Below, piece after piece: positions 7,848 through 15,226 of a stretch of 64,000 bases of DNA. Both the position numbers and the translations under genes were made by a program. Under the pieces are notes generated by a model. It did not search any database, was not told the DNA's origin, and worked only from the letters and a program-made list of their open reading frames with translations. This DNA comes from Fimbriosthenelais zetlandica (lineage: Eukaryota), in contig OZ365119.1 of assembly GCA_977030845.1 (NCBI GenBank), forward strand, positions 3,906,001 through 3,970,000, in the 5' to 3' direction. The first letter of the stretch is position 1; every line of letters starts with the position of its first letter.

Positions 7848-9422
7848 ATGTCTGGAAAGGAATTCTTCGAATTTGATCTGGAAATAAGTGACAATGAAAA
7901 AATAACAGTGAGGGTCTACAGTCCCAAGGACACTGGGGAAGAGATTCCTCGACTAACAGCCAAGCACAAGAAAAACAAACCCAACAAAAAAGATGTTGAT
8001 GTGAGTATGTTTATACAATTGTGTCCAGAATTGTAGATCAGTGCATTTTGTAAGGAGATTTTTTTGGGGGTTGGGGTGTGAGGAGGTTGGAGTTGGTGTC
8101 GGAGATGGGGAGGGTGGAGATGCTGGAGTTAAGCAGACTCATAATGCACCCCATGCATTTGGCTGCTGTTTCTTCCCCGTTGACAGCTTGCTAGTCTAAA
8201 CCCATCCAACTTAGTTTAGGAATGTGCCGATAGGAGAAAGCCAGACGACCTAATACACTGTCATGGCCTATATTCTGAGATAGAAAGACGGCAAGGGTCA
8301 GAGAGAGAATGTTTCCTACACCCAAAAATTAACCTGCTTTAAAAATGAAGTGTTCAAAGAATTTTGAAATATTTTGAACTCCAAGGGACCATTCAATATT
8401 TGAATCACTATGTAGCTCTAGATAAAGTTCATGGGTGTGTAGGGGTGTGTGTGTGTGGGGGGGGGGGGGGGCTGGTGGAGGGGGGGTGTGGTTATGTATT
8501 GACTGATTTGTAATCTGTTATAGCTAATCTAAAGTTCTTGGGGGCATGCATTTAGATATTAGTGATGTTTAACTAATTAACAAACTAATGAATACGGATG
8601 TACTAGTCTGGAATGAGGAATTGAACTGAATTTAAACCAAAATCAATGACAATGCACTGTTCATTTTTACAGGAACTCGTAGAACGATTGACTCCAGATC
8701 ACATTCGTCGGAAATTGAATCGTCAGGATACCATGGTCAAGAAAAGACAAAGCTCTCTCCGTATCGACAGCCAACGTGTCAACCGAGAATTCCGCAACAT
8801 CCACATCCAAGAAGGCGACCTCTCCTACGCCGTCGTCACTGTCGACCCAGCGGGACTACTTTGTTTTTTCTCCGACGAAAGCACCGAAGCTGACGAAGCG
8901 TTGAATCAATACATCCGAGATGGCCTCGAACTCAGCTTCAAAAGCAGTACCTACCATAGAATCAAAGTCACCGTTGAATACCTCAAAACACAGGACTGGA
9001 AGAAAAGTCGAAAATCGGCCAGGAAGAAAATCGACCAGGATGAAAAGAAGGAAAAGGATTTAGATGGCGGGGTCCAAGCTGAACGGTTTTATAGAGAAGT
9101 GCAGACAAGACAGTGGTCGACTGGGAAGACGCAGCGGCCAACTATACGTTGGTCAACACACAAGGGAATCCGGGCGGCGGTTAATGTATGGAGATGGTGG
9201 CATAATTTGAATCAAGACTTAGTAGAGAATATGCTTACAGTAGTTGGCCTGGGGGAATGCAGAGAAGATCCACCTTGCCCCGAATGTTCTTCGAAAATTA
9301 TAATTGGAAGATTTATTTTTTGGGTTATTTTTGCTTTTATTAATATTGGTATTTTGTTTAATTATATATATACAGCAATTGGCATAATTTGGACCTACAT
9401 AAGACAGGGGCCCTCATGCTAG
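7848..9422 (+). CDS. Unknown protein, copy 1 of a tandem pair (coding exons 7848-8000 and 8673-9422, about 300 aa)
   Basis: ATG conserved with copy 2; phase-0 donor GAT|gtgagt at 8000 and phase-0 acceptor ttacag|GAA at 8673; protein clearly homologous to copy 2. Upstream exon-like blocks (donors at 6686 and 7478) appear non-coding in this copy. Confidence 0.65.
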
Positions 9423-10469
9423 AACTCAATTTAACCTCTGGAACTTTCAACAAAATCGTGTAATGCTGTCTGGTTGGCAATATCCTGTGATCACAATAAC
9501 TTGATACTTTAGACCGTTTATACATCAAACCTGCCATGTGCCTTATTAACAGTTTCTTAACATTAGCTGGGTTATGCATTTCATCAACAGACAATGTTTC
9601 ATAATTAAATACAATCCTTATTGCACGGTTTTGCATAGACTGCAGTTTCTTTTGTTTATCCAATGTTAAATACACATAGAAAATATCACCATAGTCCAAA
9701 ATGGGTAGTATCGTGCTCTTATAAAGTTCAATCGCTACATGTGTAGTCAAAAGATATCTAATTTTTGCGAAAGTTTTTTAACTTCTCAGAAACTATGCCC
9801 ATGACCTTATGGAATTGATTAATACATGACAGTTTATTATCAATTAATAAACCCAGGTATAATTTACAGGTGACATTTTCTTCTAGTGGTGATTCACCAA
9901 CAAACACTGGTTTGAGAGCATCAATATTGGAGCCTTGCAAGTCGAGTCGTAATTGATCAATATATCTACACAAACTCCTAATATTTAAATGACAAAAAGT
10001 GAGAACCTTATGGCTCCCTGGAACTCTCAGTCCAGACATCCTAGCCCAAGATAAATAGTCTCCATCTCAATACAGATCCCTCTAAAATTATAACCATCAC
10101 ACAGATTCAAATGAATGACAAATAAATGACCACTACCAAAAAGTATTAAGTAAATCACTTGGATATAAGCAATAACTGAATTCAGTTTAATGGTTTGCTC
10201 CATTATAGATTGGTAGCCAAATACATGTAGCACGAACTAATAAAATATTAATATCGTCTTCATTTGTTTTCCTTTCTCTTTTTTAATATTTATATAGAGT
10301 CGTTCTTTGATAATCAGAAAGGATCTATATGTCTGCCATGCAGAGTAACCAATATGAGTAGCACATCAAGCCATTGTTACAGTTACTGTTCCTGTGTTGG
10401 GGGTGGGTGGGGTTGGGGGGGGGCTTCACTCAAGCCAGTATTACAGTTATTTTTGGGGTGGGGGGGTGG

Positions 10470-11100
10470 GGTCCTTCATTTCAACCAAGATTTCTCCCAG
10501 TTGGTTCTGTCCAGACCTCATTTTGCATGAAAACTGTACAATTTAGCCCCTATGCCAAAGCACCTGTCCATTGTAGCTTCACATATAGGTTTGTTCCCGA
10601 GTCCTGCTAATTTTAGTTGGAGATCTGGATGTTGAGCAAACTTTGCGTTGACAATATCAGTCATTACCCGAAGCTTCTTTGTTTCCCAGTCTACAGGCCC
10701 TTCCACTCTATCCCCCATCCTCTTGGTTTCAATTTTCTCAGCAGCTGCTGACTGTAAAGCCGGGACTCCACTGCTGCGATTTTGCTTGCGACACGTCTGC
10801 GACAAAGGTGATGCTTGTGTTTCAATGATCAATTTACCATTGGAGGACGGCCTTAAGGCCTTGGACACTTGAACCACAATTTATAAATTGTATTCTTACA
10901 CAACTTCACAAGCATCACCTTTGTCGCAGTAGTGTCGCAAGCAAAATCGCAGCAGTGGAGTCCCGGCTTTAATCCCCACCAAGAGCTGCTTTGGCACTCT
11001 GATAACAGATAGAAATGTCTTGTCTTTGAATTTGATGGGCACCTTTTGAAAGTTGCTTAGAATGAGTCTCCCGATTGGAAGTAGGCCTAAATTCCATGTT
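10470..11100 (-). pseudogene. NADAR (YbiA-like) domain at the 3' end of LINE ORF1, interrupted by a MITE and frameshifts
   Basis: Hand translation gives, in order: LSNFQKVPIKFKDKTFLSV; YQSAKAALGGD; TKRMGDRVEGPVDWETKKLRVMTDIVNAKFAQHPDLQLKL; ICEATMDRCFGIG; SGQNQLGEILVEMKD. Confidence 0.85.
10758..10968. mobile_element. MITE family A, 211 bp, about 62-bp TIRs, inserted in the NADAR coding region
   Basis: Perfect 37-bp TIR AGCCGGGACTCCACTGCTGCGATTTTGCTTGCGACAC extending with 2 mismatches; flanks gtaa/ttaa. Confidence 0.95.
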
Positions 11101-13100
11101 CCCTCTCGACAGAACTCGGGTGGAAGGAAGGCAGGATTATCGATGTGGTATCTGTTTCCTTAAATGGAGATTCCATCAGGGTGGATTTTGTAGTCTACAT
11201 TAAATTTTCGCTCCTTACATAGATTACCAACAGCTCGAATTTTTTCTCTTTTTGATGCAGTTGCAGGTGATACATCATCATTAACCCATACATCTTTCCA
11301 AAGATCCTTGCCCTTGAGTTTATTCGTTATGGCTAAGATATTGTTTCTAGCTTTTCTTGACTTAAGCTTTATAATCACGGGGCGTGAGCGATTCTCATGT
11401 ACCTTTCGACCAAAAACGACCAAAATCGACCGTTTCGACTTATAACATAAAAATTAGTTTTTTTTATCAGTGGTTTTATTTTTAAAGAGCAAAAAGTGTG
11501 TCTAAGGTAATTTAATTAGTCAGGAAGCAGGAGGAAGACCGGTTATCATACCGATCCTGCTTATCGTGAATTTTGTATTTTTTTCATGTCTCCTGAATAA
11601 ATTAGATGTTGTAAAAAAAACCAAAAAAAAACCGGTATATAGCTTCAATGTCATTTTCATTGAGAGTAACTCCCATATGAGTAGCCAGCTGGACTGCTGC
11701 CTCATGTAGGTTTTCCCCTGTAACCTCCCCTATTCCAGTGATTCTCAGATTACAGCTGCGCTTGTCATTTTCTAATTGTTCTACTCTATCTGACAATCTA
11801 GTATTTTCTGATTCTAAATGTCTCAAACGTGTGTTTTTTTTTATAGTCGGAGATCATTTGAGGCAGTTGTTTCGTTAATATCTCCAAACCCGCTCGGTAG
11901 GGACTCCACTGTGGTGGAAATTGGAAACTGGCAGGGATGTGAAACCGTCCCGGGCATCAGGAAACAGGGACTTGCCCATTCTTGCTCACCAACAGCTCAT
12001 GGGGGCCACTACCGTAAGTAAATTTAATATTTTTAATAAATTTAAAATAAGATCATAGCAGATAAGATGTTCAGTTAAGTTGATACACTCTGGCCAGTGT
12101 TTGCCTGTATCTTTACACCATAACAACTGCACTGCGAAGGCCGCAGTCCAGTTTGAATGTGATAAAACTCCTTGGTGGTCAAGCCTCAGGACTCTTGGCA
12201 CAGGTAGGCTGAGCCACGAGTTTGGAAGGAAATCATTGAAGCGCGACTGACTTTGATTGGGCTGATTCGAGCACATTCGAGCTTTTCTCTTAGTTGTTTT
12301 GGGTCGTAATGAAACAACTGCGAGAGAGGCTCTCATGTGTTAACCCCTAAATAAAATGGCCATGATGACCCTGGTTGTTTTTGCATACTGTACATTGCGT
12401 TGCCAAAAGGTGTAATTCCATGGAATTTAATTGTATCTATGGTACCTATGTGGGAAGACTTGGAACAGATAATCTTCAGGGTACCCCCCCCCCCCTCTCA
12501 CACACTTTCACATCCCCACGCACTCTGGCATTAGCATAACCTACCTCTCCAGTAGCTGGTATCTAGAAACACTTTTGATTTTGCCTCCATCTACATCGAA
12601 CGACTGCCCCTCTCTTCTTGCCAAGACCTAATAATAGAAATACCGGCGAAAACGACTTCCGACCTGACATTAGCGTTTAGTTTGCTGAACAACACAGACC
12701 AAGTCACCATTCAACATTTTTCGGTAAGCACTATTATAATATATTTTGCTTCTTGAGTTTTTTTGAATCTCTATTCTCTGCCTTTAGGTTTGATTTCTCC
12801 AGAAATCCTTAACTAACAATTATATAAAAATATTTTGAAATAATTGTAACTAGACAAAGAAGGCCTAAGGTACCTGAACGATTTTTCAGTTTGAAATTGT
12901 TTTTATCCTAATCATTAATCATTCCAAGCAATTTTGTAGGTATTGGGATTGTCTATCATTGAAGTTATTATGAAAACACTATTTGATATAGAATTCTTTT
13001 TCATTGTAACATTGTCAAGCATCCAATTCAAAAATCACTTATTCAAATCTGAAATATCTAAAATATAACTTATTTTTCAGAGTTGATATCAGCTGTTGAT

Positions 13101-15226
13101 ATGCCTGTAGAGGACGAATTCTTCGAATTTGATCTGCAAATAAATGACAATGAGAAAATTACCGTTAGAGTGTACAGACCCAAGGACACTGGGAAAGAGA
13201 TTCCGCGATTAACAGCCAAGCACAAGAAAAACAAACCCAACAAAAAAGATGTTGTTGTGAGTATGTTTATACAATTCTGTCCAAATAGAGTAGATCAGTG
13301 CATTTTGTAAGAATAATTTTTTGGGGGGTTGGGGTGTGAGGATGTCGGGGATGGGGAGGGTGGTGATGCTGGAGTTATGCAGACCCTATGGGGTGCATTA
13401 TGAGTCTTAAGCCGGGACTCCACTGCTGCGATTTTGTTTGCGACACGTCTGCGACAAAGGTGATGCTTGTGTTTCAATGATAAATTTACCATTGGAGGAC
13501 GGCATTAAGGCCTTAGACACTAATACTTGAACCACAATTTAAAAATTGTATTCTTACACAACTTCACAAGCATCACCTTGGTCGCAGTAGTGTCGCAAGC
13601 AAAATCGCAGAAGTAGAGTCCCGGCTTTAACTCGTTATATAAAGCCGGGACTCCACTAAAATTTACAAATTGTGATTCAAGTGTCCAAGGCCTTAAGGCC
13701 GTCCTCCACTGGTAAATTTATCAGTGAAACACAAGCAACACCTTTGTCGCAGACGTGTCGCAAGCACTGTCGCAGCAGTGGAATCCCGGCTTTAAGTCTG
13801 TGGATTTGGTTGCTGTTTATCTCTGTTTCTTCCCCGTTGACAGCTTGCTAGTGTAATCCCATCCAACTTATATAGTTTAGGAATGTACCAATAAGAGAAA
13901 GCCAGACGACCTAATAAACTGTCATGGCCTACTTTCAGAGATGGAAAAGACGGCAAGGGTCAGAGAATGTTTCCTACACCCAAAACTTAACCTGCTTTAA
14001 AAATGCTACTCTCATTCCTCCAATATTTTGTAGGCTATATATTTGGGGGGCTGGGGCGGTAGGCTGTTCAAAGAATTTTGAAGTGTTCAAAGAATTTTGG
14101 AATTTTTTGAACTCCAACGGACCATTCAATATTTAAAATCACTAATATAGTACATACTTATCCAGGTTAGACATTATGACCATACCATGAAATATATCAA
14201 AGGCAAGCTCTAGATAAAGTTCATGTGTGTGTGGGGGTGGGTGGGGGGGGGGGGCTGGTGGAGGGGTGCGGGTGGTCATGCATTGACTGATTTTATATCT
14301 GTTATCGGTAATCTAAAGTTCTTGTGGGCATGCATTTAGACATTAGTGATTTGAAATAATGTTCCAACTAAGCTAAACTCTATTAACAAACAAACTAGTG
14401 GATGTATAACTATTTAACAAACTAATAAATATCAATGTACTAGTCTGGAATGAGGAATTGAATTGAAATTAAACCAAAATTAATGAGAATCCACTGTTTA
14501 TTTTTACAGGAACTCATAAAACGATTGACTGGAGATCACATTCGTCGGAAAATGAAACCTCAGGAGACCATGGTCCAGAAAAGACAAAGCTCTCTCCGCA
14601 TCGACAGCCAACCTGTCAACCGAGAATTCCGCAACATCCACATCCAAGAAGGCAACCTCTCCTACGCCGTCGTCACTGTCGACCCAGCCGCACTACTTTG
14701 TTATTTCTCCGACGAAAGCACCCAACTTGACACCATGTTGAATTCATACATCCAAGAAGGCCTCGCTCGCAGCTTCCGAAGCAGCACCCACCATAGAATC
14801 AGAGTCACGATTGAATACCACAAGACACAGGACAAAAAGAAAAGTCCAAAATCGGCCAGGAAGAATAATGAAAGGGAAGTAGATGGCGGGGAAGCTGAAC
14901 GGTTGCATAGAGAGGTAGAGAAAAGGCAGCAGTCGACTGGGAGGACGCAGCAGCCAAATCCTTCATATGGGTCGACCCACAAGGGAGACCGAGCGGAGGT
15001 TAATTCAGAGAGATGGTGGTTTATTCTGATGGAGGATGATTCTTATGATGACGTGGAGGTTGGACAAGTTGGACAAAAAGTCCAAGGGGTGTACAAGGAT
15101 TGGCTTGCAGTTCATGGTCCCCCTCAGGGGGCAGCAACATCTGGCCTGGTGAAATGCAGTGAATATCCACCTTGCCCCGAATGTTCTTTGGCAATGAAAG
15201 TTGGAAAATTCTTCGAATGCCCTTAA
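13101..15226 (+). CDS. Unknown protein, copy 2 of the tandem pair (coding exons 13101-13256 and 14510-15226, about 290 aa)
   Basis: Same ATG position and phase-0 splice sites as copy 1; shared FFEFDL..RVY.PKDTG.EIPRLTAKHKKNKPNKKDV and REFRNIHIQEG.LSYAVVTVDPA motifs. Confidence 0.7.
13410..13626. mobile_element. MITE family A copy
   Basis: Same TIRs and core as 10758-10968, with a short internal insertion. Confidence 0.95.
13643..13791. mobile_element. MITE family A, internally deleted copy, adjacent to the previous one
   Basis: AGCCGGGACTCCAC start and GTGGAATCCCGGCT end; core in opposite orientation; shortened. Confidence 0.85.

Follow-up and report, generated by a model that had tools for sequence, protein, structure and literature searches.

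[quoted passage not shown]

The stretch of Fimbriosthenelais zetlandica DNA analysed here (contig OZ365119.1, 64,000 nucleotides, hereafter the window) carries a Jockey/CR1-group LINE copy that is dead and rearranged, and the first protein of this element is an L1-type ORF1p with a C-terminal YbiA-family NADAR domain. The copy itself, a decayed non-LTR retrotransposon on the minus strand at 9383-11832, is a functionally unimportant relic, incapable of any action: it is dead, and one catalytic Glu is missing. Both this genome and public data are rich in intact, recently active relatives with the same fusion. The architecture is already on record in the literature, in one passing sentence on oyster LINEs (PMC12477816).

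Within the window copy an L1-like ORF1 (coiled coil, RRM and CTD) is followed by NADAR, all coding pieces being on the minus strand. The end of the coiled coil and the start of the RRM occupy 11629-11832 (open frame 11826-11605, with RHLESENTRLSDRVEQLEN at 11823-11767) and match amino acids 57-125 of L062, an intact 395-aa ORF1-NADAR protein of the same genome, with 42% identity in tblastn (alignment A1). The RRM is split by a dispersed repeat of ~184 bp at approximately 11437-11620, which has 31 genome matches of up to 91% identity over query positions 6-189. The remaining RRM and the CTD are located at 11163-11423, including FGRKVHENRSRPVIIKL (11414-11364) and KIHPDGISI (11189-11163), and this piece, jointly with the part that follows, corresponds to amino acids 134-265 of L062 ORF1 (tblastn, 37% identity; also aligned in A1). 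A TAA stop at 11160-11162 marks the boundary between CTD and NADAR, through which the relatives have a single frame, and the break in A1 between the CTD piece ending in ...DGISI and the NADAR piece starting with GNRY... falls inside the unbroken L062 stretch ...SVTINGAKYG....

The N-terminal part of NADAR (GNRYHIDN...) lies at 11004-11159, with GNRYHIDNPAFLPPEF at 11159-11112 and LSNF...FLSV at 11060-11004, and is followed in a shifted frame by the helix YQSAKAALGGD (10972-11004), which was compared with SAEHAFQWKRA of L062. Just upstream of this helix, at ~11004, an 8-nt deletion has removed the E-x-x codons with the catalytic Glu (equivalent to E43 of P. nicotianae), whereas K50, E125 and D130 are retained. 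The domain is then interrupted at 10755-10972 by a palindromic MITE of 218 bp with terminal inverted repeats of ~40 nt and TA/TTA flanks; query positions 229-446 have matches of 94-99% identity at hundreds of loci (opposite strand ~74%), with more than 1000 candidates at first look. The NADAR core (KRMGDRV...W...AKFAQHPDL...CEATMDRCFGIG), which ends with TGA, is found at 10521-10754, where KRMGDRV...AKFAQHPDL spans 10724-10620 and PICEATMDRCFGIG spans 10589-10521, and the last helix is encoded in another frame at 10450-10512 (GQNQLGEILVEMKD at 10512-10471, stop at 10449-10447; translation and A1). The window piece 10521-10790 alone matches the Pfam NADAR profile (PF08719) with an E-value of 5.2e-11 and 43.5 bits, above the curated cut-off of 35.1 bits, which bears out the earlier recognition of a genuine YbiA-family NADAR.

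ORF2 survives as a remnant, in which ~40 amino acids of the N-terminus of an AP-type endonuclease (LTFCHLNIRSL..., 10039-9919; tblastn to amino acids 20-54 of L067 ORF2, 54% identity) are fused in frame to the last ~180 amino acids of the RT region (9918-9383; tblastn to amino acids 740-958 of L062 ORF2), corresponding to an internal deletion of ~730 codons. The element ends at 9383. Other 5'-truncated copies, with 86-95% identity, have only 9918-9383 in common with the window copy, and their RT extends further upstream. DNA searches of the assembly, one with the ORF1/NADAR part of the window and another with the spacer and the beginning of the endonuclease, returned the window itself as the sole match; the 5' part of this family thus survives only in the window copy, and therefore sister families have to stand in for it below.

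Scripted translation placed every peptide quoted in the preliminary description on the minus strand at the position given there, and both the MITE and the second insertion that it postulated are genuine. Its claim that ORF1 continues into NADAR through one stop holds for the stop but not for the extent of the damage, which includes at least three frame changes and the 8-nt deletion in addition to the MITE, the second short repeat and the shortened ORF2. Likewise, the CR1/L2-type ORF2 said to follow ORF1 belongs to the Jockey/CR1 group, but in the window only the remnant ending at 9383 is present.

In the genome at least 151 full NADAR domains exceed the cut-off. When loci were collected by their NADAR alone, 28 of the 29 had an ORF1 part immediately upstream, in most cases within one and the same open frame. 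In intact relatives ORF1-NADAR forms a single polypeptide of 395-860 aa, answering the question of whether one frame encodes both parts, and these proteins match Pfam NADAR with E-values of 1e-29 to 4e-33 (101-115 bits). Full-length elements consist of ORF1-NADAR, an ORF2 of 970-987 aa with APE and RT, and a poly(A) tail; the assignment to non-LTR retrotransposons is supported, and in some families a separate SGNH/GDSL-esterase-like ORF is additionally present. The layout is identical in two further public assemblies, and public proteins at E≤1e-30 form 3,624 clusters at 50% identity, both parts being present in 145 of the best 150 of them. Copies within families are 98-99% identical, which points to recent activity, and for the same reason there are too few changes within families for dN/dS of ORF1, NADAR and the tail, with pairs between families being saturated; the omega of 0.35-0.48 obtained in one pair rests on very few sites. 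In three full-length elements the two flanks were compared for target-site duplications, and they share no exact repeat of 8 nt or longer. Two side observations are a 181-aa open frame on C10, possibly a stand-alone host NADAR, and a tandem array on C14.

An AF2 model of the 395-aa L062 ORF1-NADAR protein, representing a sister family and not the window copy, has a pLDDT of 88. Its C-terminal half resembles the NADAR structure 8BAU (E 1.5e-9, TM 0.72) and YbiA 2B3W (TM 0.76); in this model NADAR has the YbiA fold, a helical core flanked by two small sheets. Residues were counted in the best 150 of the 3,624 public clusters, which are mutually at most 50% identical, using P. nicotianae numbering. 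The equivalent of E43 is Glu in 148 of these 150 proteins, that of K50 is K or R in 140, that of E125, the YbiA-type Glu in the last strand, is Glu in 147, and that of W89 is Trp in 149. All four residues are important for guanine de-ADP-ribosylation according to mutagenesis and structure (PMC11543638), and their near invariance suggests that the NADAR of the LINE relatives is catalytically intact. On the other side, one third of the proteins have Asn or Ser instead of D130, and W133 is replaced by Phe in the lineage of the window copy, and both substitutions count against reading the domain as an ADP-ribose eraser. A NADAR profile match, the occurrence of NADAR in other copies and the conservation of catalytic residues across families, on which the preliminary description had staked its case, were all found.

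In the N-terminal half of the L062 model, residues 15-80 form a helix and alpha/beta domains come after it; for this half Foldseek retrieves the human L1 ORF1p trimer (2YKP/2YKO; E 5e-7, TM 0.65-0.68) and the RRM 2W7A, in agreement with the L1-like ORF1 described earlier. Of the two profile matches anticipated for this protein, NADAR was obtained and Transposase_22 (PF02994) was not, Pfam giving only NADAR and weak coiled-coil noise; as modelled, ORF1 resembles L1-type (type II) ORF1p in fold only. Trimerisation and RNA binding of ORF1p are inferred from that fold. ORF2 belongs to the Jockey/CR1 group and is closer to Jockey/BS/X than to L1 or Tx1. The ORF2s of 970-987 aa contain both Exo_endo_phos and RVT_1, and the long C-terminal part of L1/Tx1 is absent. 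Among Swiss-Prot structures the ORF2 model matches BS, X-element and Jockey best and over full length (E 5e-44 to 2e-40), L1 and Tx1 being at ~1e-34, and in phmmer human L1 ORF2p (1e-13) scores no better than R2. Xenopus Tx1 ranks seventh, after four Jockey-clade and two L1 entries (human, slow loris), and is covered over 1-981 of its 1308 aa; this rank and partial coverage speak against the Tx1 clade for ORF2. In three full-length elements the 3' end is poly(A) and not a short tandem repeat, which fits Jockey-like elements better than classical CR1/L2.

What could such a domain do on a retrotransposon protein? ORF1p would coat the element's own RNA as a multimer, and because of this many copies of an N-glycosidase would be placed on the LINE ribonucleoprotein; it is plausible that the LINE particle carries a de-ADP-ribosylase with it. 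NADAR would remove ADP-ribose linked to guanine or cytosine from LINE RNA, nascent cDNA or target-site DNA, and removal would undo marks set by host ADP-ribosyltransferases that otherwise block reverse transcription or integration. We give an even chance to this reading, in which ORF1p-borne NADAR clears host-laid, base-linked ADP-ribose from the RNA, cDNA or target DNA. NADARs including YbiA types do take ADP-ribose off G and C of single-stranded DNA and RNA alike (PMC12945103). Candidate host writers in this genome are nine PF01129 matches, which represent at least eight ORFs of ARTC type and include a tandem cluster; the pierisin-type profiles PF03496 and PF01375 had no match in the genome, and the controls were equally silent. 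The wider proposal that LINEs escape by means of a NADAR eraser on each ORF1p subunit, with the corollary that a sizeable share of the surveyed 'animal NADAR proteins' would be retrotransposon ORF1 proteins, is tentative and rather doubtful.

The substrate could instead be a small molecule. E. coli YbiA is an N-glycosidase acting on riboflavin intermediates, and the conserved catalytic residues fit either kind of substrate, so NADAR might destroy ADP-ribose- or NAD-derived signals or toxic metabolites of host immunity. A survey by the Aravind laboratory argues for mainly soluble ADPr derivatives as the targets of phage NADARs, but for the NADAR/Macro domains in polyproteins of animal RNA viruses it argues for macromolecular ADP-ribosylation as the target (PMC9503650), and all NADAR families tested so far cleave G-ADPr in nucleic acids (PMC12945103). 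Covalent fusion to a cis-acting, RNA-coating protein also best suits a substrate on the particle, and we regard the small-molecule alternative as unlikely. Another alternative, quite unlikely in our judgement, leaves host defence aside. Target-primed reverse transcription creates nicks in target DNA, and at such nicks or on ssDNA flaps NADAR might, as a housekeeping activity in retrotransposition, trim adducts of ADP-ribose left by DNA-damage PARPs; this comes close to the second suggestion of the preliminary description, the protection of integration intermediates. PARP1 can ADP-ribosylate ssDNA adenine and phosphates at DNA ends, but the marks that PARPs are known to leave at DNA ends are attached through phosphate and are removed by macrodomains, PARG or ARH3, not by N-glycosidases (PMC12945103). 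Moreover, transposition in most LINE clades proceeds without any domain of this kind.

It is also conceivable, although improbable, that NADAR serves ORF1p as a non-catalytic module for nucleic-acid binding or structure, considering that surfaces beside the active site of NADARs have been proposed to bind ssDNA (PMC11543638) and that some lineages have Phe in place of W133 and Asn in place of D130. Conservation of the catalytic Glu, Lys and Glu in 93-99% of the 150 representatives would be unexpected for a mere scaffold. Finally, the stop and the differing frames between ORF1 and NADAR in the window, together with the lack of a second copy of the 5' part of this family in the assembly, could be taken to mean that a host NADAR exon or some other insertion lies beside the LINE by chance and that the two never formed one protein. 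This is in practice refuted, since the window pieces are colinear, without extra sequence, with the single-frame ORF1-NADAR proteins of sister families (in A1, with L062), and the same junction recurs at dozens of loci as well as in thousands of public proteins.

Accessory domains are familiar from CR1/L2-type ORF1 proteins, which include esterase (SGNH) and PHD domains. There, as here, an additional enzymatic domain is attached to, or encoded beside, an ORF1 protein of the Jockey/CR1 group, but a lipid/ester hydrolase differs in fold and reaction from an N-glycosidase acting on ADP-ribose conjugates. The closest precedent is the report that in the Pacific oyster several 'Tx1' LINE families of Repbase have ORF1 proteins with a YbiA-family NADAR, which its authors guessed to process the RNA intermediate (PMC12477816, Genome Biol 2025). 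Those elements share with ours the LINE ORF1 protein, the YbiA-type NADAR and a lophotrochozoan host. They differ in that the oyster note is a single sentence based on a Repbase match, without anatomy, copy numbers or residue analysis, and in that the elements here have an ORF2 of ~980 aa nearer to Jockey/BS/X and a host that is probably an annelid, the oyster elements being compared by description only. In Ectocarpus a retroelement has acquired a YbiA-family NADAR independently, since one Gypsy lineage carries the domain at the N-terminal end of Pol (PMC12477816); that element is an LTR retrotransposon of a brown alga and carries NADAR in Pol rather than in an RNA-binding protein.

Macro and NADAR domains also occur in the polyproteins of other genetic parasites that share these groups of hosts, namely positive-strand RNA viruses of animals, among them annelid and bivalve picornaviruses (PMC9503650). 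In both cases a domain removing ADP-ribose is fused to replication proteins, and reversal of host macromolecular ADP-ribosylation is the proposed role; the viral domain is part of an RNA polymerase polyprotein, whereas here it is on the RNA chaperone of a nuclear retrotransposon. DarG1/NADAR antitoxins and orphan phage NADARs neutralise DarT1 (PMC11543638, PMC11825919), and they have the same fold and catalytic Glu/Lys, their removal of guanine-linked ADP-ribose from DNA countering an ADP-ribosylating defence. However, the last strand has Asp in the BC4488 family and His in the phage family, in contrast to the YbiA-type Glu of the LINE domain. With this Glu, no DarT partner and LINE ORFs as neighbours, the LINE domain does not fit a DarTG1 toxin-antitoxin NADAR (BC4488 family).

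The ADP-ribosylation literature describes the roles of animal NADARs as unknown and says of endogenous G/C ADP-ribosylation that in eukaryotes it 'has not yet been discovered' (PMC11125620, PMC12945103). Transposons inflate the NADAR counts of animal genomes, and the ORF1 repertoire gains a well-supported accessory enzyme domain, alongside the esterase and PHD domains. Considering that a NADAR with apparently intact catalytic residues is fused to an RNA-coating protein in hundreds of LINE copies with recent activity and in public protein clusters numbering thousands, retrotransposon RNA or cDNA in lophotrochozoans is a concrete place to seek base ADP-ribosylation.

The minus strand of window positions 9300-12400 was translated and its ORFs were listed, with peptide coordinates fixed by script, and every peptide quoted in the preliminary description is present in that translation. 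Along the minus strand, the last part of a coiled coil and the beginning of an RRM (11832-11629) are followed by an insertion of about 184 bp within the ORF1 RRM (about 11620-11437), the remaining RRM with the CTD (11423-11163), a TAA stop (11162-11160) and the N-terminal part of NADAR, including its LSNF motif (11159-11004). The YQSAKA helix lies in a different frame (11004-10972), and beyond a 218-bp MITE (10972-10755) come the NADAR core, with a TGA at its end (10754-10521), and the final NADAR helix, whose frame differs again (10512-10450). On its own, the core piece matches Pfam NADAR (E 5.2e-11, 43.5 bits; curated cut-off 35.1); therefore the ORF1-NADAR observation is real and far beyond chance.

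The window copy itself is a dead relic, broken by its TAA stop and by three or more changes of frame. Its NADAR has also lost, to an 8-nt deletion at about 11004, the E-x-x codons that in relatives carry the counterpart of Glu E43 in the Phytophthora enzyme. In a 93-aa ORF downstream of NADAR, about 40 aa of the endonuclease N-terminus (10039-9919) stand in frame with a C-terminal RT region (9918-9383). Other copies of the family share only 9918-9383 with it, at 86-95% identity, and in them RT extends further upstream and the ORF further downstream. By this comparison, the window copy lacks about 730 internal codons and stops short at 9383. DNA searches of the assembly with the ORF1/NADAR part, and with the spacer and endonuclease start, gave no match besides the window itself; by these searches, only the window copy keeps the 5' half of its family. 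On the plus strand, an ORF of 258 aa (8646-9422), which has no Pfam match, abuts the truncated 3' end of the LINE.

Both insertions proposed to split the ORF are matched by repeats elsewhere. The MITE (query positions 229-446 of the DNA search, with 1133 first-look candidates) has hundreds of matching loci, 94-99% identical, and so was active recently; it is palindromic, matching its own reverse strand at about 74% identity, with terminal inverted repeats of about 40 nt and TA/TTA flanks. Peptides similar to those of the MITE occur in ORFs at 13295-13535 and 13672-13851, and additional copies appear to be present in other parts of the window. The insertion in the RRM is a dispersed repeat, possibly a SINE or a MITE, with 31 genome matches at up to 91% identity.

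Whether ORF1 and NADAR form a single protein was examined on natural intact relatives instead of a repaired copy or consensus. As a protein query, the NADAR core has 114 matches in the genome, mostly within long open frames, and the Pfam model has at least 151 above cut-off, a lower bound, as 150 of 483 candidates were scored. The nearest relative, locus L062 on contig C39, encodes one open frame of 395 aa, with which the window pieces are colinear at 42-45% identity, and the window TAA falls inside an uninterrupted ...SVTINGAKYG... stretch of that frame. When HMMs of the ORF1 and NADAR parts, made from an alignment of ORF1-NADAR relatives, were run on 29 loci recovered through NADAR similarity alone, the ORF1 part was found directly upstream of NADAR in 28, mostly in the same open frame. 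ORF1 and NADAR are one polypeptide in the intact relatives, and the reading of NADAR as a chance neighbour of ORF1 is refuted in practice.

In each of the eight loci for which long flanks were retrieved, LINE ORF2 sequence lies downstream, and three of these loci hold complete elements: ORF1-NADAR proteins of 395, 609 and 608 aa are followed by ORF2s of 987, 970 and 977 aa with Exo_endo_phos and RVT_1 domains, and by a poly(A) tail. Genomic copies of the same family are 98-99% identical, so the elements transposed recently; NADAR-LINEs combine high copy number with recent activity. In three families a further ORF of 219-228 aa stands between ORF1-NADAR and ORF2 (L067:2461-3135, L065:3035-3718, L068:6244-6900 minus); it carries the DSRG/DGLH motifs of LINE esterases and a weak GDSL-lipase match below the Pfam cut-off (E 5e-6). 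If this esterase-like ORF holds, those families would have two accessory enzymes. Four NADAR matches spaced 8,742-8,744 bp (G000:C14:1105826-1132436) form a tandem array with a unit of about 8.7 kb containing a NADAR-LINE. A full-length NADAR match (E 2e-32) lies in an open frame of just 181 aa (G000:C10:16164662-16165099), which may be a truncated element or, alternatively, a free-standing host NADAR gene from which the domain could have come.

Beyond this genome, a profile searched against 1.84 billion representatives found 3,624 proteins at E<=1e-30. For nearly all of the best 150, the match is a single stretch that begins at about profile position 50-170 and ends past 420, and the HMM finds the ORF1 part in 145 of them. 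The nearest ESM Atlas clusters (415-489 aa) are 100% NADAR and Eukaryota, with Annelida the commonest phylum on record, and the gene order of ORF1-NADAR then EN/RT recurs in two other assemblies. ORF2 relatives also occur in MAGs of Sedimenticola and of Candidatus Thiodiazotropha, a symbiont of lucinid clams; these matches are read as host contamination. Several public proteins (P0124, 4240 aa; P0210, 2914 aa; P0125, 1075 aa; P0155; P0237) contain 3-7 NADAR stretches apiece; they may genuinely have several NADAR domains, or their gene models may span tandem LINE copies.

The 395-aa protein was modelled with AlphaFold2 from a 19-sequence alignment (mean pLDDT 88), and the model was compared with the PDB by Foldseek. 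Its C-terminal half resembles Phytophthora NADAR (8BAU, E 1.5e-9, TM 0.72) and E. coli YbiA (2B3W, TM 0.76), and its N-terminal half the human LINE-1 ORF1p trimer (2YKP/2YKO, E 5e-7, TM 0.65-0.68), whereas neither the window pieces nor the intact relatives match Transposase_22 in Pfam. Therefore the description of ORF1 as L1-like is valid for the predicted fold, but not for family by profile. By phmmer, ORF2 is equally far from human L1 ORF2p (1e-13) and R2 (2e-12). Its AF2 model (pLDDT 85) best matches Drosophila BS, X-element and Jockey over the whole length (E 5e-44 to 2e-40, identity 19-21%), followed by L1, Tx1 and R1 (about 1e-34), and at about 980 aa it is without the long L1/Tx1 C-terminal part. 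The modelled structure and the length support the Jockey/CR1 group; the proposed CR1/L2-type ORF2 stands in this broad sense, but the elements end in poly(A) instead of the tail classical for CR1/L2.

Guanine de-ADP-ribosylation depends on E43, K50 and an acid in the last strand (E125 in YbiA types), while W89, D130 and W133 touch the pyrophosphate (Schuller et al., PMC11543638). The alignment of relatives (17 proteins of this genome and two from elsewhere, mean identity about 25%) shows little or no variation at these positions. Among the best 150 public representatives, in P. nicotianae numbering, E43 is kept in 148, E125 in 147, W89 in 149 and K75 in 135; position 50 is Lys in 105 and Arg in 35, position 130 Asp in 97 and Asn in 38, and position 133 Trp in 115, Phe in 27 and Tyr in 8. 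Judged by sequence, the active site is intact in the relatives. The last-strand Glu places the LINE NADAR in the YbiA family and rules out the DarT1-linked BC4488 family.

Multimers of L1 ORF1p bind, in cis, the RNA that encodes them. By analogy, an ORF1p of this fold would coat its own RNA likewise, which would place NADAR domains along the whole LINE particle. Every tested NADAR family removes ADP-ribose from guanine in ssDNA/ssRNA, NADAR and YbiA types also remove it from cytosine, and CARP-1 homologues, mainly of bivalves but also of other invertebrates, write such marks (PMC12945103). Candidate writers are present in this genome as at least eight ARTC-type PF01129 ORFs, in a tandem cluster (G000:C11:49557685-49568790) and scattered (including C25:30507299 and C37:20941847). 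We prefer, at roughly even chances, the reading that NADAR erases base-linked ADP-ribose from LINE RNA, cDNA or target DNA. A small molecule as the substrate is rather unlikely, clearance of PARP adducts from the nick made at integration slightly more so, and a non-catalytic module, considered beside the conserved catalytic residues, is improbable. The preliminary interpretation is partly supported, in the fusion architecture; a packaged de-ADP-ribosylase that counters host defence or protects integration intermediates may be its function.

Full-text literature searches on NADAR in transposons found one relevant paper, an Ectocarpus study with NADAR in Pol of one Gypsy lineage, which also notes YbiA-family NADAR domains in ORF1 of several oyster 'Tx1' LINE families (PMC12477816); the ORF1-NADAR architecture was therefore already known in passing. 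The NADAR literature, including PMC12945103, records NADARs of unknown role in molluscs, cnidarians and other animals and leaves transposons unmentioned, and others occur in annelid and bivalve picornaviruses and further RNA-virus polyproteins (PMC9503650). As a kind, ORF1-NADAR LINEs were known before but hardly described; their anatomy, scale and catalytic conservation and a different LINE group are new here, and the host phylum probably differs from that of the oyster. At the family level, the finding is of real interest for the ADP-ribosylation and transposon fields alike.
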